A stretch of DNA of 64,000 bases, from NCBI GenBank assembly GCA_951804945.1, contig OX638159.1, positions 16,368,001 through 16,432,000 of the forward strand, written 5' to 3'. Below, piece after piece: positions 1,877 through 64,000 of this stretch. The position numbers and the translations under genes are program-made. How positions within the stretch are numbered: the first letter of the stretch is position 1; every line of letters begins with the position of its first letter. Source of the DNA: Podarcis cretensis. Its lineage: Eukaryota. The notes under the pieces were generated by a model. It worked only from the letters and a program-made list of their open reading frames with translations. It was not told where the DNA came from and searched no databases.

Positions 1877-4309
1877 TTACTTTCTACTTTCCAGCAGATC
1901 TTTATATCTAATCCAAACATTATACAATGCTTTCCTTACAATATGGTTTTTAAAACTTTTATACACCTTTACCTTGTCATACCATAAGTATGCATGCCAA
2001 CCAAAGTTATTGTCGTACCCTTCCAGGTCCAAAATGCCAGTGTTCTCAAGAAGTAGCCAGTGTTTCAACCAGCAGAAAGCTGCCGATTCATAATAAAGTC
2101 TTAAGTCCGGCAGGGCAAACCCCCCTCTATCCTTTGCATCAGTTAAGATCTTGAATTTAATTCTGGGCTTTTTGCCCTGCCAGACAAATTTTGATATATC
2201 TTTCTGCCACTTCTTGAAACAGTCCATCTTGTCCAAAATCTGCAACGTCTGGAATAAAAACAGCATTCTAGGCAATACATTCATCTTAATAGTAGCAATT
2301 CGGCCTAACAAGGAAAGTTTCAACCTTGACCATGTTTCCAGATCCTTCTTTACCTCTGCCCAACTTTTTTCATAATTATCCTTAAATAGGTTCACATTCT
2401 TGGTTGTTAAGTTTAACCCCAGGTATTTTACCCTTTTTGTTATTTCCAGGCCTGTTTCATTCTGAAAACTCTCTCTTTCTTCCATTGTTAAATTTTTTTC
2501 CAACACTTTCGTTTTTTGTTTGTTCAATTTAAAACCTGCTACTCGACCAAATATTTCAATTAGTTCTAATACTCTTTTAGTACTAGTGTCTGGCTGTTGC
2601 AAGGTCAATACTAGATCATCTGCAAATGCTCTTAACTTGTAATGTCTAACTCCGACCTGAACTCCTTTAACCAACTGGTCCTTTCTAATCATGTTTAACA
2701 AAACCTCCAGGACTGATATAAAAAGCAAAGGGGATATTGGGCATCCCTGCCGTGTACCTTTTTCTATGGGTATTTCTTCTGTTACCACATTGTTTACAAT
2801 TAACTTGGCCTTTTGTTGGGAATATATTGCACCTATACCGTTTTCAAAACCTTGACCTACCCCCATCCCTTGGAGATTCTTTTTCATAAAAGTCCAACAG
2901 ATATTGTCAAAGGCTTTCTCCGCGTCTACAAAAATCAGAACTGCTTTCCTGTTAATGTCAACATCTAACAACTCCAAAATGTCTATAATGTTCCTCACAT
3001 TGTCTGACATATATCTCCCTGGGAGAAAGCCTGTTTGGTCCTTATGAATCTCGTCTGTCAACACTCTTTTCAATCTTTTTGCCAAAATGTCTGCAAAAAT
3101 TTTGTAATCCACATTGAGTAAAGATATAGGGCGGTAGTTTCTAACCTGGTTCTTCTCAGTTTCTGTCTTCGGTATAAGTGAGATGAAAGCCTCTTTCCAC
3201 GATTCAGGTGCCTTTTTCCCCTTCAGAATTTCATTGCAAACTTCCTTCAATGGTTGTATCAAGCATTCTTTCAGCATTTTGTAGTATTTAGCCGTCAGGC
3301 CGTCTGGTCCTGGTGATTTTCCCAATTTCATATTTTGGATGGCACCCTCTATTTCTTGTTCTGTTATTTCCTCATTTAGAGTCCTTTTACTTTGTTCTGG
3401 AATTTTTGGTAAGCCGTATTTTCTGATGAATTCTTCTATTTCTTGTTCATTAATTGGCCCTTGTGCATACAATTTCTTAAAAAAGCTTTGAAAGCAATTG
3501 TTTATCTCATTAGGTTTGTGGATAATTTTTCCATCCATTTCTAGACTGGTTACAGTGTTCATTTTCTGCCTTTTTTTCAATTGCCATGACAGAAGTTTCC
3601 CACATTTGTCCGCTGATTCGAAAGTTCTTTGTCTCATTTGCTTTATCTTCCATATTTCTACTTTTTTTGTTCTTGACGCCAGACTGCTAGAAATCCAAAT
3701 TTGATCTATTCTTGTCCATGTCATTTTTGCCTCGGAGAAGAAAGTTCCCTCTCTCTCTAGAGGATTCCTTGTTCTCCAAATATCAATCAAGTCCATAGTT
3801 TCAGTCATTTCAAAAAAGATCTTTGGTAGTCTCCCTTCTTTTGAGATCACTTGTCTCTGTGCTTTATCCATGTTTGTTGAGACAACTCCATTCATATCCC
3901 CCATCATTACGATTTTATAGTCTATGAAATCAACTAGTGTCTCATGCAACTTCTTAAAGAATTCGGCCTTCCCCTCATTTGGGGCATATACTCCAACAAT
4001 CAAAATTTTTTCTCCTTGAATTTGTATTTCAATTGCCAGGTATCTTCCTTGTTCATCTTTAAATATCAATTTTGGAGCCAATTTTTCCTTTGCATAGATC
4101 ACCACACCTCTTTTCTTCACTTTGTCTGATGAGATAAATTCTTGACCAAGTCTCTTATTTGTCAATAATTTCCTGTGTATCCTGGCAATATGGGTTTCTT
4201 GCAAACATATTATGTCTAATTGTTCTCTCTTCAAAATGTGAAAAACTTGTCGTCTTTTCCGAGGAAGGTTCAAGCCATTACAGTTCCAACTAAGAAGTTG
4301 CAGAGACAT
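1877..4309 (-). CDS. L1 ORF2p (APE endonuclease + reverse transcriptase), internally deleted and C-terminally truncated, ~810 aa
   Basis: EN motifs SWNCNGLN, LQETH, YAPN, GDMN, RIDQIW; RT motifs KSPGPDG, YRPISLLN, DAEKAFD, GTRQGCPISP, AFADD, YLG. True ATG is at 4309, 7 nt after the ORF1 stop. The stop codon falls inside the TSD. Confidence 0.9.
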   Translation of the reverse strand: MSLQLLSWNCNGLNLPRKRRQVFHILKREQLDIICLQETHIARIHRKLLTNKRLGQEFISSDKVKKRGVVIYAKEKLAPKLIFKDEQGRYLAIEIQIQGEKILIVGVYAPNEGKAEFFKKLHETLVDFIDYKIVMMGDMNGVVSTNMDKAQRQVISKEGRLPKIFFEMTETMDLIDIWRTRNPLEREGTFFSEAKMTWTRIDQIWISSSLASRTKKVEIWKIKQMRQRTFESADKCGKLLSWQLKKRQKMNTVTSLEMDGKIIHKPNEINNCFQSFFKKLYAQGPINEQEIEEFIRKYGLPKIPEQSKRTLNEEITEQEIEGAIQNMKLGKSPGPDGLTAKYYKMLKECLIQPLKEVCNEILKGKKAPESWKEAFISLIPKTETEKNQVRNYRPISLLNVDYKIFADILAKRLKRVLTDEIHKDQTGFLPGRYMSDNVRNIIDILELLDVDINRKAVLIFVDAEKAFDNICWTFMKKNLQGMGVGQGFENGIGAIYSQQKAKLIVNNVVTEEIPIEKGTRQGCPISPLLFISVLEVLLNMIRKDQLVKGVQVGVRHYKLRAFADDLVLTLQQPDTSTKRVLELIEIFGRVAGFKLNKQKTKVLEKNLTMEERESFQNETGLEITKRVKYLGLNLTTKNVNLFKDNYEKSWAEVKKDLETWSRLKLSLLGRIATIKMNVLPRMLFLFQTLQILDKMDCFKKWQKDISKFVWQGKKPRIKFKILTDAKDRGGFALPDLRLYYESAAFCWLKHWLLLENTGILDLEGYDNNFGWHAYLWYDKVKVYKSFKNHIVRKALYNVWIRYKDLLESRK

Positions 4310-6230
4310 TTTGTGTTTAAGTAGCTGTTCCTCCAACTGCTCCAAGCTTCTGTTCTTCCTCCGATGGTGGTGGTAAAAGTCCAAATGATAGATTTGCTAT
4401 ATCAGGTGGTTCTTTCTCCTCTGCAGTTCCTTTCTGCAAATCCTCCAGGTATCTCTCCAGAAATTGTTCTTTGTCCTGAATTGTTTTTATTTTGATCTTT
4501 CTTCCTTTAAAGTTAAAGGATAGTCCTTGTGGGAACTCCCATCTGAATGGTATGGTATTTTTCTTCAACAGGTCTGCTAGGCTTTTATAGTAGGTTCTCA
4601 CCTCTAAAATATATTTGGGAATGTCCTTAAAAATCTGTATTTGACAGTTTTGGATCACCAGTGCCTTTTGATAATGCAAGTTCAGTATTTTATCTCTTTC
4701 TTCTTTTGATCTCAGTGTAATTAGACAATCCCTTGGTTTCTTGTCCTGTCTCCTGCCCAGCCGGAAGGCTGTTGTTATCTCAAATTCATCATCTTCCGCC
4801 CATTCCTCTTGCCAAAAAACTGCAAAGTTCTCTGTAAGGAATTCCACAAGGTTTTCCCCTTCCCCTTCAGGAACCAGTCTAAGTTTTAAATTCTTCTCTT
4901 TCCTCTGAAGTTCCAATAAGGAGAGGGCTGCATCATGCTCATTCACTTTTTTAATAATAGGCCCAAACTTTTCCCTTGTCTCCTCAGCCGTAGTTTTTGC
5001 ACTTTCTGCAATCTTTCGTGTTTCAGAGCTCTCCTGGATTAATCTATTTATAGAATCTGTGTTAGACTTTACACTGGCTGTATTAACATCTAGTCTTGTT
5101 GTCATTTCTGTTAATTTTTTGGAGTTCTCTGTCGATAGCTTTGTCAATGCTTCCAGAGATTGATTTATTTTAAGGAGTGCCTGTGTCATAGGATCCATAG
5201 AAGCTGCTGTTTTTTCCTGTGCAGCTGGTGCAGTTCCTGATATGGAGCCCCTTTTCTTGTGGGATTGTTTTGCTTTAAGCCTTGTTACTATCTCTTCTGT
5301 AGGGCCACTCATATCCTCAAGGTCGTTTTCACAGAGTTAGTTTCCAAGTGGAAAATCCCACTGTTACTTCTCCTAATGCAACAGTTTTACTTAAGACCCT
5401 CTAGAGGGAGCATTCAATTGTATCCAAATGGCAGGGAAAAAACAAAGAAGCAGGAAAGTATAACAGTAGCCATTAATTTCCAATGTCCAAACCACAAAGT
5501 CTCTGTCTTCTATGTAGCCAAAATGCAACAGGGTAAATCTAAGGTCCAGTAACTTTGTTACTAACAAGCCCCCACTTTAAAGAGTTTGACAGTTCATATC
5601 CCGGTGTCTTATTTGGGCAGCCCGTCCTGGGGGGGTTCGACAGTGGAAGATCTTATTTTCCCATTAATTTTCCGGCAGGTTAACAATGTCCCAATCCCTT
5701 CCCCCCTTCTCCTGCCTGTCGGGGGGAAGATTTAGTCCGATGTCAGTTTGACAGCTTAAAAAAAAGAAAAGTTCCCTTCAAATGCAGCTTGATTTTTCGT
5801 TGCTTTGTTTCTCCTGCAGCTCCGGGGAGGCAGACTTCCTTAATTTATGCCTTCCCCGTTTTCAGCCAAATTTCTTTTTAGTGTCCCGTCAATTTCCAAT
5901 CTTACTCACGGGTGTTGTAGTCAATTTCCAGTTACAGGAAGGAATCGGCGCTCTCCGTTCATGGCGACGCGGCTTCACTCCGCTAGCTGGGTGACGACTC
6001 TCAGCACCGCGCTTACCCCGATGCCGCTCAGAAGCCTTTAAAAAGGCTCCTTCACAGTGCCGGGGGGCGCAAAAGGTGCCCACCGAATCTCCTTTGTTCA
6101 CAGGCTCCGCGCCTGTGATTTTAGGGGTCCCCCGCTTGCCGTAGCGGGTAAGACCCGAACTAGCGAAGCAGTCCTGCCTCGGAGCTCGAGGCTCGGACCG
6201 CCATTAAACGCTGGCGCCGACCGGAAGTCC
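1887..6230 (-). mobile_element. L1-clade LINE, 5'-complete and 3'-truncated, with no poly(A) tail
   Basis: GC-rich 5' UTR of ~900 bp starting GACTTCCGG, then ORF1 and ORF2 (EN+RT). Direct repeat TCCGTTTTGCATTACTTTCTA at 1866-1886 and 6228-6248 (TSD 18-21 bp, depending on assignment of TCC). Confidence 0.93.
4317..5312 (-). CDS. L1 ORF1p (coiled coil + RRM + CTD), intact 331 aa
   Basis: Heptad-rich N-terminal half, then NLKLRLVPE, AFRLG, PRDCLI, IFKDIP and FRWEFP motifs typical of vertebrate L1 ORF1. Lies directly upstream of ORF2. Confidence 0.88.
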   Translation of the reverse strand: MSGPTEEIVTRLKAKQSHKKRGSISGTAPAAQEKTAASMDPMTQALLKINQSLEALTKLSTENSKKLTEMTTRLDVNTASVKSNTDSINRLIQESSETRKIAESAKTTAEETREKFGPIIKKVNEHDAALSLLELQRKEKNLKLRLVPEGEGENLVEFLTENFAVFWQEEWAEDDEFEITTAFRLGRRQDKKPRDCLITLRSKEERDKILNLHYQKALVIQNCQIQIFKDIPKYILEVRTYYKSLADLLKKNTIPFRWEFPQGLSFNFKGRKIKIKTIQDKEQFLERYLEDLQKGTAEEKEPPDIANLSFGLLPPPSEEEQKLGAVGGTAT

Positions 6231-6709
6231 GTTTTGCATTACTTTCTATGGGAAAGTGTGCCTTGGTTTTGGAATGCTTTGGTTTTGGAACGGAATTCCG
6301 GGATGGATTAAGTTTGAGAACCAAGGTACCACTGTATGTTCATATTGCATATGGGGGCCTAAGGTTGAGAGGGATTATTCTGCCTACAATACAGTATTAG
6401 CGGCTACAATACAGTATGCCAACTCTCATTACAATTATGTACATGCAGAGAAATTATCATGGCACCTTTACAAGCAATAGTTTACTCAACACCCCACCCC
6501 TTCAGAATCATGTTAACAAATGTCAAATGTGGAGCTGTTCTACATGTTGTCTAGGTATCTTATCTACATACGGATACCTATTTTTGCAATGCGTTTAAGA
6601 AACGGAGCATTCTCTCTTTTTAACTATCTTAATATCTTTGATATCTTAATATCTTTGAAATCAACAGGATTATCAGCGCAGTCCTGTGCATGTGTACTCA
6701 GAGCTCAGC

Positions 6710-12418: not shown

Positions 12419-13441
12419 TGGACAGGAAAATTGGCTTCCAGATGGAAAAATCAAAATTGGAAACAGAATTGTTAGAATCCAATACTAAAAATTTGTCAGA
12501 AATGTATAATTTGCTGTTGAAATGGAATACGCAGGATGAAACAGTGAAATCAGCTATGATTACGTGGGCACAAGACATTGGTCATAACATTATGTTTGCT
12601 GACTGGGAAAAGTTGTGGACCACCGGTATGAAATTTACGGCATGTAATGCCTTAAGAGAAAATATTATGAAAATGATTTATAGATGGTACATGACCCCAG
12701 TCAAGCTTGCAAAAATTTACCACTTACCTGATAATAAATGTTGGAAATGTAAAGAAAATGAAGGTACCTTTTTTCACCTTTGGTGGACGTGCCCTAAGAT
12801 TAAGGCGTTCTGGGAAATGATATATAATTGAATTGAAAAAGGTATTTAAATATACCTTTCTAAAGAAACCAGAGGCCTTTCTCTTGGGTATTGTCGGCCA
12901 AACGGTGTCAAAGAAGGATAGAACATTTTTTATGTATGCTACAACAGCAGCAAGGATACTCATCGCAAAGTATTGGAAGACACAAGATCTACCCACCTTG
13001 GAAGAATGACAGATGAAGGTGATAGACTATATGGGACTGGCAGATATGACGGGCAGAATCCGAGACCAGGGGAGAGAGACAGCGGAAGAAGATTGGAAGA
13101 AATTTAAGGACTATCTTAAGAAATACTGTAAAATTAATGAGTGTTAGAATGGCGTTGGCTTAGAAATTGTGTGGTTTCCAGCTGAATTGGATAAGTAACA
13201 AGAAAAGAAGGGTTAAAAATTTAAATGAAATTAAGGGGAAGGATTTGCTGGATTAACATAATAGAAATTGGAATACAGAGAGGGGAGGTATGGGGAAGTC
13301 GGGAAAGTAAGGTATAAGAAAAAAAGGGAATGAAATTATACCTGTTCTTTTTTGGTTTGTTTTTCTTTGTGTTTTATTATTGTTTTATTTTGCTTTTATA
13401 CAATTATTGGAAAACTTAATAAAATTCTTTTTTAAAAAAAA
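12419..13441 (+). mobile_element. L1-clade LINE, 5'-truncated copy (ORF2 C-terminus, 3' UTR, A tail)
   Basis: CWKC...HLWWTCP zinc-knuckle peptide, frameshift near 12829, AATAAA and A-run. 18-bp TSD TAAGTTTCTTATTATCTC at 12401-12418 and 13442-13459. Confidence 0.92.

Positions 13442-23335: not shown

Positions 23336-23395
<60 letters not shown>
23336..23395. repeat. (TA)n(CA)n compound microsatellite
   Basis: Direct reading. Confidence 0.95.
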
Positions 23396-23399
<4 letters not shown>

Positions 23400-25260: not shown

Positions 25261-26100
25261 CAGTGGTACCTTGGTTCTCAAATGCCTTGGTTCTCAAACG
25301 CCTTGGTTCCCAAACTCCGAAAACCCTGAAGTGTTCCAGTTTTCAAATGTTTTTCAGAAGTTGAAGATCCGATGCGGTTGTTGGCTATTGTTTCCGGGGT
25401 GCCTGCACCAATCAGAAGCTGCGCCTTGGTTTTCGAACATTTCAGAAGTCAAACAGACTTCCGGAACGGATTAAGTTTGGCGCTTTTGTTTTTGCTATTT
25501 ATTTTGTTGGGTTTTTTTGTTTTTGAGGCTTTTTCAGTTAATTTGTTTTTGTGACTGTGTGGAACCCAGTTCAGCTACTGATTGACTATGTGACTGAGGA
25601 AATTGATAAAAGCCCCCCATCCAAACCATGACTATCATCAGTGCAGGTAAGAAAAAAATATTTTTAATTTTTATCATCTACAATACTGTCTTATTTATTT
25701 TATAGTACAGTACACGGCATTTCCATGCACTGCTCTGGTTCGCCAGAAGCAGCTTAGTCATGCTGGCCACATGACCCGGAAGCTGTCTGCGGACAAACGC
25801 CAGCTCCCTCGGCCTATAGAGCGAGATGACCACACAACCCGAGTCATCCGTGACTGGACCTAACAGTCAGGGGTACCTTTACCTTTACAATTATTCTTGC
25901 TTTCATTTTATGGATCAATGGTCTCGTTAGATAGTAAAGTTCATGTTAAATTGCTATTTTAGGGGTTGTTTTTAAAAATCTGGAACGGATTAATCCATTT
26001 TGCATTACTTTCTTTGGGAATGCACGCCTTGGTTTTGGAACGCTTTGGTTTTGGAACAGACTTCTGGAACGGATTAAGTATGAGAACCAAGGTACCACTG
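25261..26100. mobile_element. pogo-like MITE (long subtype) containing a Sauria SINE fragment
   Basis: CAGTGGTACCTTGG / CCAAGGTACCACTG TIRs with TA flanks. Confidence 0.9.
25714..25888 (+). mobile_element. 5'-truncated Sauria SINE nested in the MITE
   Basis: CATGCTGGCCACATGACCCGGAAG core and ACCTTTACCTTTAC tail inserted after TAGTACAGTAC of the MITE. Confidence 0.85.
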
Positions 26101-28399
26101 TATAAGAAGAATAAAAGGCAGCAGTAGTCGGGCAGTGGCTTCAACTAGTCACCCTTTGGTTAGTTTCTAGTTGAAAGGATATTTGAGCCAAATATAATCA
26201 TTTGAAACATCCACAAGAAGTTGCAATTTTCTTCAATACCAACTATTGCCAGTGAAAACAAAATAAACCACTCTTTTTTTATTTACAAGACCAACATGAA
26301 AAGTTGGCACTAGAAAAAAGGAAACAAATAATAAATGTTATTATCTATGTGTTCATTCTAGATGTTTTCTGCTTCTTTTGCTACTATCAGTGCACATGGG
26401 CACATACAGCTGGAGAAAGTTTATTCCCCAGGGAAGCTCATTATCCAAATCAAGTATGTGCAGTGAGATGACAACATTTGGAGTCATCTCAGTCCATCCC
26501 AGGGAGCAGGACAGAAAGACAAGCCAGAGGCCAGCAACAAAAGTTCCATGTACACCCAGGAAATAAAGTGAGTTTTGTTTTATTTTTTGAAATGGCAAGC
26601 TGATGGAAGCATCAGGGAGGATGGACCTTGAGAATAATCCCTTTATTGTCATGTCACTCTCAAGGCCAATGTTCATGGAATCTCAGACATTCATCTCCAT
26701 CCCTTCCTCTGCAGGAAGAGACCACATTTTTGTTCCCTTTTGCCTGAGAAAGCCACTTTCCACTTTTAATCTTGCACACAAGGATCTTCCTGGCTGACTG
26801 ACAGCTGAAGAAATAATCAGTGGCTCTTCTAATCCTGGCACCAGAGATGCTAGACAGGAACTTACAACTGCCAACTGGAGCTGTCGGTCGAAGAGTTATG
26901 CATCCATCAGCATTGGCACTTACAACGAAAAGGAATTCAGAGGGTGAATTAAAATACAGCCTTTTCAATTACTATCAAATCTTCTTGTTGAAGTCAAGAC
27001 AAACAGACGTGCAAGCCCCTAAGACACCTGCACAGGAAGGTCTACTATGGACTGAAGTTTGGATTAATGTAGCAGTAACCAATTGGTGTCACTCCATCAG
27101 GCACAATGCTTTTTGGGCTCCATAAAGAAATGACCCTACAGCTATATGAAAGCATAATGATAACTCCAACACAATAATGTTAGACCTGTTTTTCTGTCTC
27201 CTTTTCTGTTTTCACTTAAGAATCTCAACTATGTGCTGAGAATCTTTTTTTAAAAAAATGTTGGCTACAATCCTATAATAAAGACTTAATTGTAGCAAGC
27301 CTCTTTAGAACTGAACATTTATATGACTACTAGCTTTAAAAAAAGTATACCAAACTAAATGTATTCTAGAATTACTTTCAAAGATGGGAAGCACTGACGA
27401 TTAAGTGCTCTGTGATACTTCCTTTGCTACCTGAGTTCAAACAACTGCTGTCATCCAGTATATAATCCAAACAATACATTTTATCTGAATTCTATTAGGT
27501 ATTAGCAGTTGTAATTGAATCCCTAATTAACACATACTTTTCAGCTCTGCAAAGTTATTATTCTTTTCAGATATTAGTGCCTGTACTGCAATGATACACT
27601 ACATTAGCCCTTAAACCAAAGAAGATATTGGACATGAAAAATAAAATTTTTTGACAACAAAACGCTTCTCTTTCCAAAGCTCCATCAGGGTTCACACATG
27701 AGCTTCATTTTCTCTTACATGTTAGAGGCAACTCCAAACATGCAAATCACATTACTTTGTGTGCACTGGTGCTCTCAGACATGGAAAAGTCTGTCTGAAG
27801 AGGTTATCTGTGTGAAAGATATAGACTATTCTGCTAAGACAGAGGTCAACCTGCTTACCAGATGTTAATGTGCAACTACTGAAAGCCAACTTCTTATTAT
27901 CTGGCCATTACTGGAATCATTTGAAAAATAAATATTTGGAATTGCCAGCTGACCTTGTGGGGCAGTAAAGTGAGAAGGGTAAAGATTGTCATTTACAAGA
28001 AACAATTGGAAAGCAATGATGGAGGCTGAGGGCATTTAGCAGAACCACACAAATATCAGTACTGCAACTACTATCTATTCTATTTCTTACCTGCCCTTTA
28101 TCTTACAGTCGCAAGGCAGGTTCAACAATTTGAAATCAAATTTTAAAAACAGTTTAAAACAAATTATAATCATAGTAATAGGGTGGGTCCTGAAGAAGTA
28201 TATCTCAGGTATCGAATGCCAGGGCAAAGTGGTACAGCTTTAAAATACAATGGAAATTTTACAATGAAGATGCCAGGCATAGCTATGTGGGAAGGGAATT
28301 CCGCCATCTAGTAGCTGCCACAGAAAATGCCCTCTCCCAAACCACACAAACACTGAACTTATTAGAGCAGTGGAGCTACCAAGATGGCTCCCTCAAGAT

Positions 28400-33786: not shown

Positions 33787-34190
33787 AATTTAATTTGTAT
33801 ACTGCCCTATACCCACAGGTCTCAGGGCTGTTCACAACATAAAATCACACTATAAAAACACAAAATACATAACAAAAACAAAAACAAAAACAACCCAATT
33901 ATCCCCCCTTCCACAACACATTTTAAAAGGGCATTGGATGTCAATCAGCCAAAGGCCTGGTTAAAGAGGAACGTTTTCGCTTGGCACCTAAAGGTGTATA
34001 ATGAAGATGCCAGCAGATTCTCCCTGGGGAGAGCATTCCACAAATGGAGAACCACTGAAGAAAAGATACATTGCCACCCTCTGGACTTATCATGGAGAGG
34101 CACACAAAGAAGGGCCTCAGAAGATGTTCTCAGGGTCCAGGTAGGTTCATATGGAGAAAGGCGGTCCTTGAGGTATTGCAGTCCTGAGCT
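33787..34190 (-). mobile_element. Older L2-like LINE 3' fragment
   Basis: Degenerate similarity to the other L2/CR1-group 3' ends (AAAGGCCTGGTTAAAGAGGAACGTTTTCGCTTGGCACC; GGGAGAGCATTCCAC). Confidence 0.65.
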
Positions 34191-42251: not shown

Positions 42252-42886
42252 CAGTGGTACCTTGGTTCTCAAACACCTTGGTTCTCAAACACCCAAAACC
42301 CGGAAGTGTTTTTCTGAAGCCGAACATCCGATGCGGCTGTCGGCTATTGCTTCCGGGGCACCTGCAGCAATCAGAAGCTGTGCCTTGGTTTTTGAACATT
42401 TCGGAAGTCAAACAGACTTCCAGAATGGATTAAGTTCGGCACTTTTGTTTTTGCTATTTATTTTTCATTTTTGATTTTGAGGCTTTTTCGGTTAATTTGT
42501 TTTTGTGACTGGGTGGAACCCAGTTCAGCTACTGACTGATTGACTGATTGTGTGACTGTGGAAATGGATAAAAGCCCCCCATCCAAACAATGACTATCAT
42601 CAGTGCAAGTAAGAAAAAAAAATAATTTTAATTTTAATCATCTACAATACTGTCATTTATTTTATAGTACAGTACATTGATTATTGCTTCAGTTTATGGA
42701 TCAATGGTCTCATTATTCAGTAAAGTTCATGTTAAATTGCTGTTTTAGGGGTTGTTTTCAAGAGTTTGAAACAGATTAATCCATTTTGCATTACTTTCTA
42801 TGGGAAAGTGTGCCTTGGTTTTGGAACGCTTTGGTTTTGGAACAGACTTCTGGAATGGATTAAGTTTGAGAACCAAGATACCACTG
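42252..42886. mobile_element. pogo-like MITE (long subtype), uninterrupted
   Basis: CAGTGGTACCTTGG / CCAAGATACCACTG with TA flanks; gives the empty-site sequence for the L1 insertion at 1887-6230. Confidence 0.9.
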
Positions 42887-44755
42887 TATTTTGGACTGCA
42901 TTCATAATATTCAGCCGCTGCTACAGAACAAGACAAATAAACCCAGACAAAAATATTGCTGGGGTGGGGGGATAAATTTCTTTTCTCTTAATGCCCTTTT
43001 CCTATATAACTTTTTGACCACATTGAGCATGATTCTTTAAAGCCTTGTATTCAAACCTTGTATTCTGCCTAACTGACAGAATACAGTTAGGAAACAGTTG
43101 TTATTTACAATATCTGTCTGGTGAAGAAAAAAAAAGATTAAGAGATCAAGTTTCCCTTGACTTCCAAACTAGTCGAGCCACAGCTGGTGCATCAGATTTT
43201 GAGCAACTGTTTCACATACACACAACAAGACTTCTGTCTTTCCGTGGGGTTTGCTCAGGTCATCTGCATGTGGTGTGGATTAAAGTAGCAATAAAGCTCT
43301 ATTATAAAAGTAGGCTAAACAGTGAATTTATACACCAAACTCCTGTGACACTGGTAAATTCTGTCATCTGACACTCTCTTCAGAGGGGTTTCCGTATCTT
43401 GCACACAGAGAAAGGTCTCTTTTAAGTACAATTGAAAACAGTCCAAAATCTGTGATTAATCCTGTGTACTCTCAGGCTGAATATAAATAATGCATAGGAA
43501 AGTTCAAGATAAATGTAATGTTATGTGGGAGAAAAAATGTTTTGAGAAGTACTACCTTCCAAATGTACCTTTCAATGGTATCTTCAATTTACACACAGGC
43601 CTCTGTCATCAATGAATTGTCCCTTAAAACTACTAAAGCTTAAACAAGTAAAGTACCAATCTGGCTAGCAAGATTACTTTTTTTGCATTTGTCAAAGCTT
43701 TGCTAGTGTGTACTGGGCCTTGGAAGCTTTTTTATTTCAGCACTGTGAGAAGGAGATGTGTATGACAGGAGAGATGTGCAAATTTATGACATACAGCTGT
43801 GAAAATGTGCTTTGAGTTTAAAGGAAAATTCAAATGCTGAGGTTCATATTTTAAAAGAATATCTTTGTTAAATAGGTGAAGCACGCCTCCATACTATGAA
43901 CTTAGTGAACACACATTTCTTCCATTTGGTACACCTTTCAAATTAGCCCACCAAAGTATTGCTAGCCTGCTGGGAACTGATAGAGAAACAAAGAGCTCCA
44001 TCCTTTTTGAGACAACCCGATGCATTTTTATGCTGAAAATGGGGAAAGTGTGTGTCCCTTCTCCGGTGGCAAGCTTGGTTTCTATGCTAGCTGCATAGTA
44101 GAATAGAGTACTCTGTCCCTCCTCCACCAGCTTACTCATTTGTCACCTATGGCTACCATGTTTGATTACAACATTGGAGTAGCAGACATTCGTCATAAGA
44201 GATTGGCATATCATTCATGATGTGCTTCAACACAGTTATTTTTTCTCACGGTTTTCTGCGTATGTATGTACTGCAGTAACAGTTCAATGAGTGGAGTTCA
44301 TATCCTTATCATAGTCTAATCTAGAATACCAAAGTATCTATGAGAGGGAGCCAATTAAGCAATTTGCCCTTTAGACATCCTCCTGTTAAAAGGAAGAAGT
44401 TGGCAGCTGCCCAGATGAGCCACGGAGAGGAACCCCCCTCCCTTTAGACCTTCTCTCACGAGTGAGGTAGGGGCAGTCCAGGTGGTCTATGGAGGAACCC
44501 GCTATAGACTTCCTCCCAAGTAGAGGAAAGAGGTGGCAGCAGGTTGCCCAGGCAACCATGGAGTCCTACTTGGGAGTGAAGGATCAATTGGTGGCATCCA
44601 TAAAGTGGACAGTGGTGGCAGCAGAACAATTGCAGAGGACTGTTGTGACTGTTCCTCTGCAGATTGCCTGGGCTTCCTGCCACCAGCACTGCCCTCCAAT
44701 GCTACTGCGAAGGCCTGGCAGCTCTCTGAAGGTTGTCATCAGTCAATAGTTTTCT

Positions 44756-46586
44756 TTTTTTCTTTTTTTTATAAAATTTTTATTAGGTTTTCACATTTTA
44801 TACACACACACACAACAAAAACAAAAACAAAACATATATAATTTCATACTCTTACTTTCTTTACCCTCTTTCCTTGACTTCCCCCCACCCCCTCTTCATA
44901 CATCCCAATTCCAATAATTAATTCTGCAAGTTCTTATCTCTCATCTTTAACATATTATTATTATTTTTAAAACTTAACTCTTTTTACTTATCCACATTTA
45001 ACTTATCCAATTCTCTTATAAACATTAAATCTTTTTTCTAAGGTCGACCTAATTTCTCTCCAACGAATTTCTCCCTTTATATTTTAATTAATTATATGTC
45101 ATAATGGCCAAATACAAAAATCATAAAATTTTAAAATTCTGTTCTCCCCTCCCTCCCTACCCCGGTTTCCATCCCTTATGTCCACAGAAACAGTTCCTAG
45201 CCCGGATTCCTCACATCCGAGGCCTTCAAGTCTCTGTCAGTCTCTCTCCGCCGATTTTGTTGGTAACCCTTTTTGTTGGTCCTCAGGTCTCGAAGGAGTT
45301 CAGTCGCAGTCACACCAAGTTTTCTTCCATCCAAAATACTTAAAAGCAGGTGCTGCAAAAGGTCAGCTGCTCTCCCATACTCAAAGAGGAAGTCCCAATC
45401 ATATTTCTTTATTCTTTTAAATTCCAGTATTCCAGGTACTCCAGGGACTTCCGCCTTCATCTTTCTCATCTTTCGCAGATTTGTAATCCGAAGATCTTCT
45501 TCTTTATTTCCTGACAATATAGGCTTCTGATTGGTATTTTCCTTTTCCGCTCCTTCTTTCCTCTCCACCTGTTCCAAAAATGTCTCTTCTGGTTCAGCTG
45601 CAGATTTCTTATTAGTCAAATCCTTTATGCATTCAGCAGAGTTGTTTGTTTTAGAATTCAAGGTCATAAGTTCTTTGTTCATAGCCGTACTCTGCTCTTG
45701 CAGGATTCCCACGAGAAAAAAATTTTTTCTATCTCTGCCAGTAATTTTCCCTCTGCAGCCATTGTAATGTCTCTAGTTCCCCCTAGGGGGATTCCAATTA
45801 CTTGATAGTCCTTTTCCAATAGTCCGTTACTTATTGTTTATAGCTACGTTGTTTCCAACCACCTCAGTTCAAATGCAACACTTTTAATTCAGAGAGTTAT
45901 TAAGTAACAAAGTTCTTAACTTTAACCGCCCGTTTGACAGCTCCTTTGACAGCTGTCAAACTCCTTATTCTTTTTCCTCCGGCTTACGCACAGGACACTC
46001 CCAGGTTCGGGGGGGGGGGGTTTACACAAAAGCTTCCAAAATTCCTCACTTTCTCTCCAGCACAAAGACTTCTTCTGTCAAATTCATTGAAGTATCTTTT
46101 ATCTGACACCAAAAACAATACTCTCCACCTTAGTTCTCCAATCCTTGCTTTAGATCGTTTGTAGGTGGGGGGGGGTGCGGACTTCCCTTTAGCACGTCCC
46201 CCGATTGTACCGAATTCAAAGGTATAAATTTTAAAGTCCAGATTCCAATCTACTCACGGGTTGTTTATTTTCCAGTCCGAATTTTGGGAAAAAAGTCAGC
46301 GCTCTCCGGCCATGGCTCGCGGCTACGCTCCACTGAAGTAGCGGTCTACTCACAGCACCACGCCGCTCCCCGTACCCTCTCCGTAGCCTTTAAAAAGGCT
46401 CTTCGTGGGTCGGGGAAGGCGCTTAAAGGTGCCCGCCGAGTCACCAAGTCCGCAGGCTTCCGCGCCTGCGGTTTCTAAGGGTCCCCGCGTCGCCGGCGCG
46501 GTAAGACCCGTCCTCAGCAGAGCCGATTCCCTCCGGAGCTCGGAGGGAATCCGCCATTAATCCGATCGCGCTAACCCGGAAGCTTC
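44756..46586 (-). mobile_element. Non-autonomous L1 derivative (half-L1/HAL1-like), ~1.83 kb
   Basis: 5' end is homologous to the L1 5' UTR at 5890-6230; 3' end is homologous to the L1 3' UTR at 13220-13441; AATAAA and A tail; 19-bp TSD CATCAGTCAATAGTTTTCT (44737-44755, 46587-46605); no EN or RT sequence. Confidence 0.85.
45197..45762 (-). pseudogene. Short coiled-coil ORF of the half-L1-like element (one apparent frameshift)
   Basis: ATG in good context (ACAATGG) at 45762 gives MAAEGKLLAEIEKIF. It joins the 171-codon open frame (45712-45197) only with a 1-nt shift in the A6/T7 homopolymer. Confidence 0.55.
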
Positions 46587-49129
46587 CATCAGTCAATAGT
46601 TTTCTGTGACCAAGCAAACTGCAGCATGGCGACACTCACATTTGAGTGTGTAAATGTGTGTAAATGTTAAGGAATCTTTCATAGACTGTAGTCCTACTTA
46701 TCTGAAAGTTAGTTTCATTGAACCGAATGCATCTTAATTCTGAGACAACACGCAAAGGATTGCACTATTAATATGTTATGCTGTATTTTCATTATTCTGC
46801 TTTGGACAGGAATCCCTAACATACTTCCTAGGAAGTAAATGCAGTGGGAAAGTGGGAATACTCCAGTCTCGCTCTATGGGAAGAAAAACTGTGCCAACTG
46901 CTTTGTTTTATCTGTATGCACCAACAATCTCTGCAACTATACGCCATAAATATAAATATGGCTGGATTTTATGCTCCTATAATAGCCATTACATGTCTAA
47001 ATGGCGTGGGTTTATCTATTGCTGCCCATGCAGAATGTAATTCCACACATGCATCTTTCTATTCTCCCCACTGCACCCCCTGTGGGCCTTCAAAATTTGC
47101 TCCAGAGGGCTGGGGGACCCTCTGGAACAGATTTTACAGCCACACAAAGGCTGCAGGAGGGAGAAGATGAAAGCCTGTCTCCTGAGCAGAAATCTGCTTG
47201 CAGAACACTGGATTCCACCCAAAACTATTAAGTACTGTTCTATAAAAATAGAGCAATGGTGAAACTAGAAAACAACTATATTGAGTAATTTTCAAAAATA
47301 ATTGCTCAGCTCTCCCATACTATCTTACAAACATTAAAAAGCCAGTTTTATGTGACTGTCATTTTTTAAAAAGTGATTATTTTAATGAAGGTGACTTATC
47401 TGCAGAAAAAAATTCAATAATTAAAATCCACTAAAGTCATTAATGATGCTCTGCAGCCCAAGAACACCCTTTAACAATAGTTCATGAAAAGCTCCCAGGC
47501 ATCACTTTCAAAGTACTTCTCTAATAGAACACAATGCCTTTTACTCACCCCACCCGCCATGTCTGAATGACTCAGAAACAAGGGTGTGTTTTTTTAAAAA
47601 ATAAAATGGTTAAATAAAGCTCTTTCTCTTCAAAGTTGCCTTTTACAGAATAGAAACAGGCTGTCTAGCTCAGCCCTACACTTGTGAAGCCTTTATTCAT
47701 CTAACAACTCTAACCCATTCAGCTGTGTTGTCACAGTGATCACTTTTCCTAGGAGGCTGGATCTAGTCAATGGAAAGAATGTCTGAAGCAGATAGCCTAG
47801 ACAGGCTCCGTTTCTGGGTTCAGGCCTGGTGGTGTGTCAACATTCTCCTCGATTTTTTCCTTTACCACTGACAATGATCACAAATTTACTGAACATGTTT
47901 TACCATGATTGCTTCCCTAGTTAGAAATCATCGATGGCAATTCTCAGGAATCATTAGAGACTTGCACTGACTTGATTCAAGTGTGTTAGTAGCTCCAAAT
48001 TGTAAGGCTTTTTGGGAAATTTGCATATTTCAACATGCATTACTTTAATCATATTTTACAGTCATTATAAGTAAAAGTGAGGTTAGCCAAAATGGTAAAT
48101 CTAGGAGAGTGTGATAAATTATGTGTTGTCTGTATAATATAGGAAGTAGTGATTATAACAGTAAGAACTCATATTTCTGTTCTTAATAATGCTCATGATA
48201 TAAAAAGTAGAATCTTTAAATGAAACTACTCTTAGTTTGATATCACCAAATAACTGAGTAGTTTAATTGATATAAATTGATTTCAATTGATCTACTCTGA
48301 ATATGCCTTACCTGGCTATCACCCTCTCTTATAAATTGTAACACAACTAAACAGCAAAACACAGTTTCAGATTTCTCAGTGGATTATATGATCCTCCTGG
48401 AAGCAAATTTTGTTGACACCTTTTTCCAAATGTATATAAATAAATAAAGTTTTTTTAATAGATTAGTGACAGCTAACTGAATAAACAAGATAAATTATTT
48501 AACACAATTCCACTGGCAATGACAAAGAAACTGCTTTTGTTTTCCTTTTACCACTGCAAACACCCTTGTGAGTTATAACATCAATTATTCAATTAATGTA
48601 GTGTAAGTCAGGGTTAATTAAGATAACTTCGCTAAATCTGAGCTGCTAGTTCATTCAAATCCTGCAAGCAAGCCCAGAAAGGCTTCTGATTTAAGCTATC
48701 AAGTTGCTGAGGCTTAGCAAAGTTTTTCAACCTATCTTCTCCCATGCCAGAAAGCTAAACAACAAATCCCCAGATGAAAACTTATGAACAAAGTAGAATA
48801 ATATTTCTGACTACATCTTGGATATTGTGACACTAAATAAAAGAAAACATTTCTGCAAATGTATAGGATCAGATTTGATTCAAGTATTAAAACATAACTA
48901 GTCTACAGTAGTTCTATGACTAGATGGGATGGTGGGGTTTAAAGATTGAGATCTTTTCTCTTTTGAACTGCCAAAGATTTAAATGAGGAACTATAGACTG
49001 GACCTCCTTTTTCCACAACTTGTGGAACCACATTCTTTCCTCTGAAAATTCAGCAAAGACCTATTGGAAAGTGAATGAAAGAGAATGGAGGCTAATTGAA
49101 TGAAGTACAAAATGTCCACAAACCACTCA

Positions 49130-63904: not shown

Positions 63905-64000
63905 GTCTTTTCTTTCAAAAAAATTTTTTATTGGTTTTCACAACATTATAAACAAACAAACACATAAGACAAACATAAATCATAGCCTTATTAAAAATTA
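63905..64000 (-). mobile_element. 3' end of another L1-clade element (runs off the window)
   Basis: Minus strand ...TGTGAAAACCAATAAAAAATTTT then an A-rich tract, matching the 3' termini at 44770-44800 and 13410-13441. Confidence 0.55.

Follow-up and report, generated by a model that had tools for sequence, protein, structure and literature searches.

Two retroposed elements on the minus strand of a 64,000-nucleotide (nt) stretch of the Podarcis cretensis genome (contig OX638159.1, positions 16,368,001 to 16,432,000; hereafter the window, in whose coordinates all positions are given) begin with the same 5'-terminal module, and the sense transcript of this module folds into the same multi-helix structure in both of its diverged copies. 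The first, element A, is an L1 retrotransposon; the second, element B, is a much shorter non-autonomous element.

Two retroposed elements in the window

1886-6227, minus strand: element A, L1 copy, 5' end complete, 3'-truncated within open reading frame (ORF) 2, without poly(A)
44756-46586, minus strand: element B, non-autonomous and retroposed, 1.83 kb; shares the 5' module of element A and has a single ORF of 171 codons, an AATAAA signal and an A-rich tail

Element A lies between the halves of a perfect 20-bp target-site duplication (1866-1885 and 6228-6247) and is inserted into an abundant repeat resembling short interspersed elements (SINEs), of which an empty-site paralogue is found at ~42780-42800. 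Its 5' untranslated region (UTR) spans 915 nt (6227 to 5313) and is followed by ORF1 (4317-5312), which shows a weak match to human L1 ORF1p (2ykp, E 0.0025), and by ORF2 (1877-4384), which overlaps ORF1 by 68 nt. The ORF2 product contains the Pfam domains RVT_1 (1.4e-36) and Exo_endo_phos (6.7e-12) and matches human L1 ORF2p (8sxt) with E 4e-139.

Element B bears all the marks of retroposition by the L1 machinery: a target-site duplication of 19 bp (44737-44755 and 46587-46605), a poly(A) tail and an L1 5' end. HAL1, or 'half-L1', elements are non-autonomous L1 derivatives, and it was under this label that the first-pass annotation of the window had placed element B. The L1-type 5' end, the single ORF, the poly(A) tail and the target-site duplication are indeed HAL1-like; the difference lies in the ORF, which shows no clear ORF1 homology. 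Its 171 codons match no Pfam family and no PDB entry at E <= 10, and comparison with ORF1 of element A by BLASTP yields only a coiled-coil-like stretch of 83 residues with 24% identity (E 0.032), so that the 'half-L1' label is left without backing from protein homology.

The shared 5'-terminal module

Similarity between the two elements is confined to their first ~335 nt. In a blastn comparison 5894-6227 aligns with 46243-46582 at 71% identity over 354 columns, and nhmmer, run within the window, finds the rest of the element A 5' UTR to be without similarity to element B. Neither program detects a third copy of the module in the 64 kb. Both elements start at the same nucleotides, (GA)CTTCCGG, followed 14-16 nt further on by TTAATGGCGG: the tip of element A reads GACTTCCGGTC, 14 nt and ATGGCG, and that of element B (GAAG)CTTCCGGGT, 16 nt and ATGGCG. 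We take CTTCCGG and ATGGCGG to be ETS-like and YY1-like core-promoter motifs, respectively. A CpG island coincides with the module and is confined to it.

6198-6229, minus strand: 5'-terminal motif of element A, GACTTCCGG (6221-6229) ... TTAATGGCGG (6198-6207)
5921-5962, minus strand: upstream ORF (uORF) of element A, 13 codons; the AUG, in GCCAUG context, immediately follows the fold described below
46296-46313, minus strand: uORF of element B, 5 codons
5904-5909, minus strand: GTGAGT of element A, conserved, 5' splice-site-like; similarity to element B stops ~10 nt later (5894)
46252-46257, minus strand: GTGAGT of element B, conserved

The 14 nt that follow the conserved GCCAUG are largely kept as nucleotides, and the uORF peptide is not conserved. 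The conserved CCCGUGAGUA (CCCGTGAGTA, 5' splice-site-like) stands ~10 nt before the end of the homology between the elements.

The module recurs outside the window. One contig of a related organism can be aligned to 5893-6229 without gaps (10 differences), and its sequence becomes unlike beyond either end of the match, at 6229 on the 5' side; the module is therefore a discrete unit that has the same 5' end elsewhere. The family is present in large numbers in sequence runs of three related organisms, all of which consist of contigs. Exact-pattern scans of metagenome and viral contig collections gave 0 matches each; with thousands of copies per genome, the family should have turned up had these collections included lizard DNA. 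No SINE-like head derived from tRNA, 7SL or 5S RNA was detected, ARAGORN reporting 0 tRNA-like genes and Rfam no small-RNA family. We also considered a captured host first exon as the source of the module and rejected it on account of the non-conserved uORF peptide and the resemblance of the 5' tip to the published L1 consensus.

A four-way junction in the sense transcript

The two copies were folded independently with RNAfold on the sense (minus) strand and compared with dinucleotide shuffles (n=200). The first-pass annotation had described four stems, H1 to H4, in 6004-6198 and in the corresponding part of element B. All four are present as spelled in both copies, and the fold in this region is confirmed; the domain is, however, larger (~5963-6229), lies at the exact 5' ends of the elements and includes a further helix, P1, which had been missed.

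6170-6199, minus strand: H1 of element A, 5 + 6 bp, loop AGCUC
46525-46551, minus strand: H1 of element B, perfect 11 bp, loop AGCUC
6158-6169, minus strand: P1 5' arm of element A, pairs with 5977-5988, 12 bp with 3 G.U, closes the four-way junction
5977-5988, minus strand: P1 3' arm of element A, pairs with 6158-6169
46512-46523, minus strand: P1 5' arm of element B, pairs with 46327-46338, 12 bp with 3 G.U
46327-46338, minus strand: P1 3' arm of element B, pairs with 46512-46523
6125-6156, minus strand: H2 of element A, 6 + 6 bp
46479-46509, minus strand: H2 of element B, 6 + 5 bp
6098-6118, minus strand: H3 of element A, 8 bp, loop GCGGA
46450-46471, minus strand: H3 of element B, 8 bp
5993-6092, minus strand: H4, long arm of element A, with invariant apical hairpin 6033-6048
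46342-46446, minus strand: H4, long arm of element B, with invariant apical hairpin 46385-46400

In both copies the architecture is that of H1 followed by P1, which closes H2, H3 and H4 into a four-way junction. Both copies carry the same 16-nt apical hairpin in H4, a sequence without further occurrence in the window (0.14 occurrences expected by chance), and the outer 6 bp of H2 are likewise identical; the inner H2 stem differs in sequence and is 5 bp long in element B. Inspection by eye for a pseudoknot joining the H3 loop to the 5' end yielded a pairing that was dropped, its partners being complementary in element B and not in element A.

The fold is more stable than expected from dinucleotide composition. 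Module A reaches a minimum free energy (MFE) of -129.7 kcal/mol (z -4.66) and module B one of -134.6 kcal/mol (z -5.70), values that none of the 200 shuffles attains in either case. Three 256-nt segments taken further downstream in the same UTRs give z-scores of -1.57, +1.49 and +0.07; these controls are unstructured, so that the signal belongs to the module in particular and does not characterise the UTRs at large. The antisense strand folds less stably, by 21 kcal/mol in element A (-108.7, z -2.67) and by 15 kcal/mol in element B (-120.0, z -5.25), and there are 13 G.U pairs in the sense fold of element A and 10 in that of element B. Because of these G.U pairs and the weaker antisense folds, the predicted structures favour the sense RNA as the relevant strand; effects in single-stranded complementary DNA (cDNA) or DNA are possible for those hairpins that consist of Watson-Crick pairs.

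The invariant AGCUC loop of H1, taken with its closing G-C pair (6181-6187 and 46535-46541), contains the self-complementary GAGCUC. Judging from this self-complementarity, the AGCU of H1 could make a loop-loop (kissing) contact between two RNA molecules.

Compensatory change between the copies

The first-pass annotation had further proposed that this multi-hairpin fold of the sense strand is common to diverged 5' ends and has been kept through compensatory change, a proposal that the independent folds and permutation nulls bear out. The nulls start from a structure-blind MAFFT alignment, in which 168 of 269 aligned positions are identical, and permute the substituted letters of element B among the same columns (n=500). 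As MAFFT alignments misalign H2 and H3 through indels of 1-2 nt, they were used only for this conservative test. The element B sequence (276 nt) folds to -141.6 kcal/mol, compared with -120.9 +/- 5.7 for the permuted sequences, 0/500 of which reach it; the result is again 0/500 when the substitutions are moved to random columns. Among the 90 pairs of the element A MFE structure, 66 are canonical in element B (null 58.4 +/- 2.9; reached by 1/500), and 12 pairs are kept with both sides changed (null 6.6 +/- 2.0; reached by 5/500).

A structure-annotated alignment served for the pair tables. The two independent MFE structures have 50 pairs in common, of which 38 are unchanged, 8 differ in one partner and 4 in both. 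The RNAalifold consensus comprises 66 pairs (53 identical, 8 one-sided, 5 two-sided), and six controls in which the pairing partner was slid along the alignment contain 0 two-sided changes. The five two-sided compensations of the consensus fall in H1 (6190/6178 and 6189/6179), in H3 (6118/6098 and 6116/6100, where U-A has become C-G and A-U has become G-C) and in H4 (6060/6023). P1 differs between the copies by four one-sided wobble changes. In the outer part of H1, the inner part of H2 and the last four pairs of P1, helix length is kept and the sequence is largely replaced. Among the variants listed for related organisms, three fall inside the fold and all are compatible with it: one (6059) lies in an internal loop of H4, and the other two (6163 C>U and 6166 U>C) stand opposite G in P1, where pairing is kept.

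A real, non-random and conserved RNA-type fold is thus present at the 5' end of this lizard L1 lineage and of its derivative element. That the fold is under selection for a function in cis appears to us somewhat more probable than the contrary, given the predicted structures and their statistics, and several observations weigh against it. The covariation evidence comes from two sequences only, which is below the grade of a phylogeny-aware (R-scape) analysis. Pair counts taken from the structure-annotated alignment, and the alifold consensus built on it, are by construction biased towards the fold; in the structure-blind alignment, 24 of the 47 changed pairs fail to be canonical, in part through indels and register shifts affecting H1, H2 and the lower part of P1. 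Identity is more frequent in paired columns (114/132) than in unpaired ones (81/129); much of the fold is therefore plain sequence conservation, with covariation resting on a modest number of sites, and a promoter constraint acting on the DNA could be an alternative source of the conserved stems. The antisense strand of element B also folds well by z-score, and the retention of the module by element B would be explained by the need for an internal promoter alone.

A reading at the DNA level only would make the module an internal promoter and CpG island, and its hairpins would be binding sites for transcription factors, palindromic or GC-rich, that play no part in the RNA. We consider this unlikely. 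The coincidence of the CpG island with the module, the greater conservation of stems than of linkers, and the folding of the antisense strand in both copies all agree with it, as does the description of the ETS-like and YY1-like tip motifs as a transcription start signal in a study of Anolis L1 (PMC5381506). Protein-binding sites would not, however, be expected to undergo the symmetric changes in both arms seen in H1, H3 and H4, nor to form the 12-bp P1, with arms ~170 nt apart and 3 G.U pairs in each copy. The failure of all 500 letter-permuted pseudo-copies to fold as well as element B, and the advantage of the sense over the antisense strand, also speak against a purely DNA-level constraint.

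It may also be asked whether structure has been selected at all. The stems might have been inherited from a common ancestor, the compensations having arisen by chance or through a mutational process that creates inverted repeats, namely template switching. Such an origin would be in keeping with the perfect palindromes formed by H1 of element B and by both H3 stems, which are what template switching would produce, and with the restriction to two copies. It is, however, very improbable in view of the permutation nulls, the retention of five helices in the same order with different sequences, the wobble intermediates in the long-range P1 and the absence of structure in the downstream UTR controls.

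Known RNA families and published L1 5' ends

The first-pass annotation did not recognise the module as a described family, in agreement with the 0 matches of Rfam 15 on the window at gathering score. At E <= 10 the two modules give 3 and 4 matches at chance level only, with no ribozyme or internal ribosome entry site (IRES) family among them; the rejected matches are algC, a CRISPR repeat, pieces of long non-coding RNAs, mir-9847 and a histone stem-loop (11.4 bits).

Self-cleavage, which had been offered as one possible function, accordingly finds no support in either copy. The other functions put forward there, in translation or as a signal for RNP assembly or trans-mobilisation, are conjectural. 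A 5' self-cleaving ribozyme, whether of the hepatitis delta virus (HDV) type or akin to the twister-sister-like ribozyme of human L1, would suit the position of the module, which occupies the extreme 5' terminus of a non-LTR element, and self-cleavage by a ribozyme has been published for the human L1 5' UTR (10.1101/2021.04.06.438727, PMC11620745). We nevertheless give it hardly any credence: besides the lack of a ribozyme family match, the element has its own promoter motifs and a defined start nucleotide, and the fold is a plain four-way junction in which no conserved nested pseudoknot was found by eye.

The closest published counterpart of the module is the 5' terminus of the L1 elements of Anolis 'lizard clade 1'. 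Their 5' UTRs can be aligned across very diverged families, with the first ~120 bp most conserved (Boissinot & Sookdeo 2016, PMC5381506); the same study gives their 5' extremity as GACTTCCGGTGN8ATGGCG, describes these motifs as a transcription start signal, and attributes the conservation of the 5' end to dependence on a host transcription factor. Clade-1 5' UTRs measure 792-1465 nt and contain CpG islands, and ORF1 and ORF2 overlap or have no spacer between them (PMC5381506). Element A is alike in its UTR length, ORF overlap, CpG island and the order GACTTCCGG...ATGGCG; the spacer between the two motifs is 8 nt in the Anolis consensus versus 14-16 nt in elements A and B.

In the text of that study, its figures and supplements aside, discussion of RNA secondary structure is limited to the 3' UTR and intergenic spacer, and the term 'intron' is not used (PMC5381506). 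In the literature searched, which did not extend to these figures and supplements (including the Fig. 8 alignment), no RNA fold is described for a reptile L1 5' UTR. The novelty claimed for the module is thereby divided: conservation of the sequence at the 5' terminus is already in print, as conserved sequence and promoter (PMC5381506), and the RNA fold with its compensatory change, which elements A and B add, is apparently unpublished.

The human L1 5' UTR offers a more distant comparison. A YY1 site near +13 to +21 directs initiation there (PMC5381506), and splice donors and spliced integrated retrotransposed elements (SpIREs) are documented (PMC5860796). The lizard module resembles it in having an internal promoter downstream of the start site, an ATGGCG-type motif near the 5' end and splice-donor-like sites in the UTR, and has no sequence similarity to it. 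Mammalian L1 5' UTRs have often been replaced, whereas the lizard 5' end is kept across families (PMC5381506).

Structured 5' RNAs occur in several other retroelements, among them the HDV-like ribozyme and protein-binding RNA at the 5' end of R2, the 5' pseudoknot of Ty1 and the leaders of retroviruses (TAR, DIS, psi). In each of them, as in the lizard module, a cis-acting domain of several helices opens the RNA that serves as transposition intermediate, and H1, with its invariant self-complementary AGCU loop on a variable stem, recalls the retroviral dimerisation loop. None of them is known to be homologous to the lizard module, which has no Rfam match. To our knowledge, neither dimerisation nor dependence on a 5' packaging signal has been described for L1 RNAs, and we know of no conserved four-way-junction fold described for the human L1 5' UTR.

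A proposed promoter and RNA leader in overlapping layers

What could be the role of this module? From its sequence, it is best explained as the conserved 5'-terminal part (~335 nt) of the squamate 'clade 1' L1 5' UTR, in which two layers overlap. The first ~35 nt (GACTTCCGG ...) would act as DNA, forming an internal promoter of ETS/YY1 type, and its defined start nucleotide would cause every retroposed copy to begin at the same position. Transcript nucleotides ~31-253 would act as RNA, with H1 followed by the P1-closed four-way junction. Selection on the sense transcript would keep the fold, and the stems would be free to vary through two-sided compensations, wobble intermediates and replaced helices. 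After transcription the fold may work in cis as a leader platform, most likely governing the assembly or stability of the L1 ribonucleoprotein (RNP), or the way in which ribosomes or the spliceosome reach the uORF and GUGAGU. We favour such a platform because the AUG and uORF, the GTGAGT and the end of the homology directly follow the domain. Non-autonomous derivatives would then have to carry the fold together with the promoter.

If the fold is such a domain, it would bear on the evolution of L1. L1 5' UTRs are usually seen as disposable promoters, swapped in the course of an arms race with the host, and the lizard 5' ends are kept across very old families. An RNA domain would add a second, post-transcriptional constraint and help explain why the lizard 5' end cannot be replaced. 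It would also provide a concrete cis element for RNP assembly, translation, splicing control and hijacking by short elements, and, should a deep alignment bear it out, would deserve a family of its own in Rfam.

More specific readings of the module may be envisaged. According to one of them, the module controls translation: the stable closed domain would block scanning, and ribosomes would have to shunt or enter internally in order to reach the uORF AUG and, later, ORF1. In both copies the fold (~-130 to -140 kcal/mol) indeed ends just before a short uORF (13 and 5 codons) that has its AUG in GCCAUG context, and in the alifold consensus a 5'-proximal AUGGC is base-paired with the GCCAU that opens the uORF. 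This pairing is invariant, however, and thus provides no covariation; the uORF peptide is not conserved, no IRES family is matched in Rfam by either copy, and ORF1 of element A begins ~650 nt further downstream. Control of translation by these means seems to us improbable.

Another reading assigns a role to splicing. The module might be exon 1 of an L1 leader with a spliceosomal intron, its fold being comparable to a retroviral leader or constitutive transport element and the AGCU loop of H1 serving as a kissing or protein-binding site. The four-way junction would then decide between spliced RNA, for protein production, and unspliced RNA, exported and packaged as the template for transposition, and non-autonomous elements would copy the AGCU loop of H1 in order to be mobilised. 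We put this forward as a conjecture of low probability. The candidate donors are the GUGAGU at 5904-5909 (A) and 46252-46257 (B), and candidate acceptors lie 510 (A) and 475 (B) nt downstream of the GU, within 12-nt palindromes: CCCTCTAG/AGGG at ~5400 in element A and CCCCCTAG/GGGG at ~45783 in element B. No joint across the putative intron is listed among the contigs, which are short, and this says nothing on splicing; 9 contigs of a run that is perhaps RNA (X7) extend over 5765-6207 with the GTGAGT retained, and they speak neither for nor against splicing.

The perfect 12-nt palindromes themselves read CCCTCTAGAGGG (~5396-5409) and CCCCCTAGGGGG (45781-45792), and a long pyrimidine tract precedes that of element A.

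Additional observations on elements A and B

Element A is cut inside ORF2 at about residue 833, and its stop codon falls within the target-site duplication. The last bases of the element, GGAAAGT, resemble the start of the duplicated target, AGAAAGT, and this resemblance suggests that reverse transcription was primed internally through microhomology. Relative to human ORF2p, the endonuclease aligns at query 28-244 and chain 8-222 and the reverse transcriptase at query 240-784 and chain 352-896; from the difference between the two offsets, the linker that joins these domains in element A is ~110 residues shorter than in the human protein. The SINE-like repeat that hosts element A (window 6228-6340, 1452-1885, 42324-42892 and 25367-26103) is extremely abundant, with a summed contig depth of ~1.6-2.4 million in one run (X1), compared with 0.05-0.3 million over the L1 UTR.

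The ORF region of element B extends over 45197-45800, and an ATG-initiated frame just upstream (start near 45762) is out of frame with the ORF, so that the original reading frame may have been longer and is now broken. The 3' tail of the element (44761-44935) has partial matches of 72-84% identity at 13239-13372, 63906-63984, 33845-33889 and 23362-23399, which probably represent the 3' ends of related, 5'-truncated elements.

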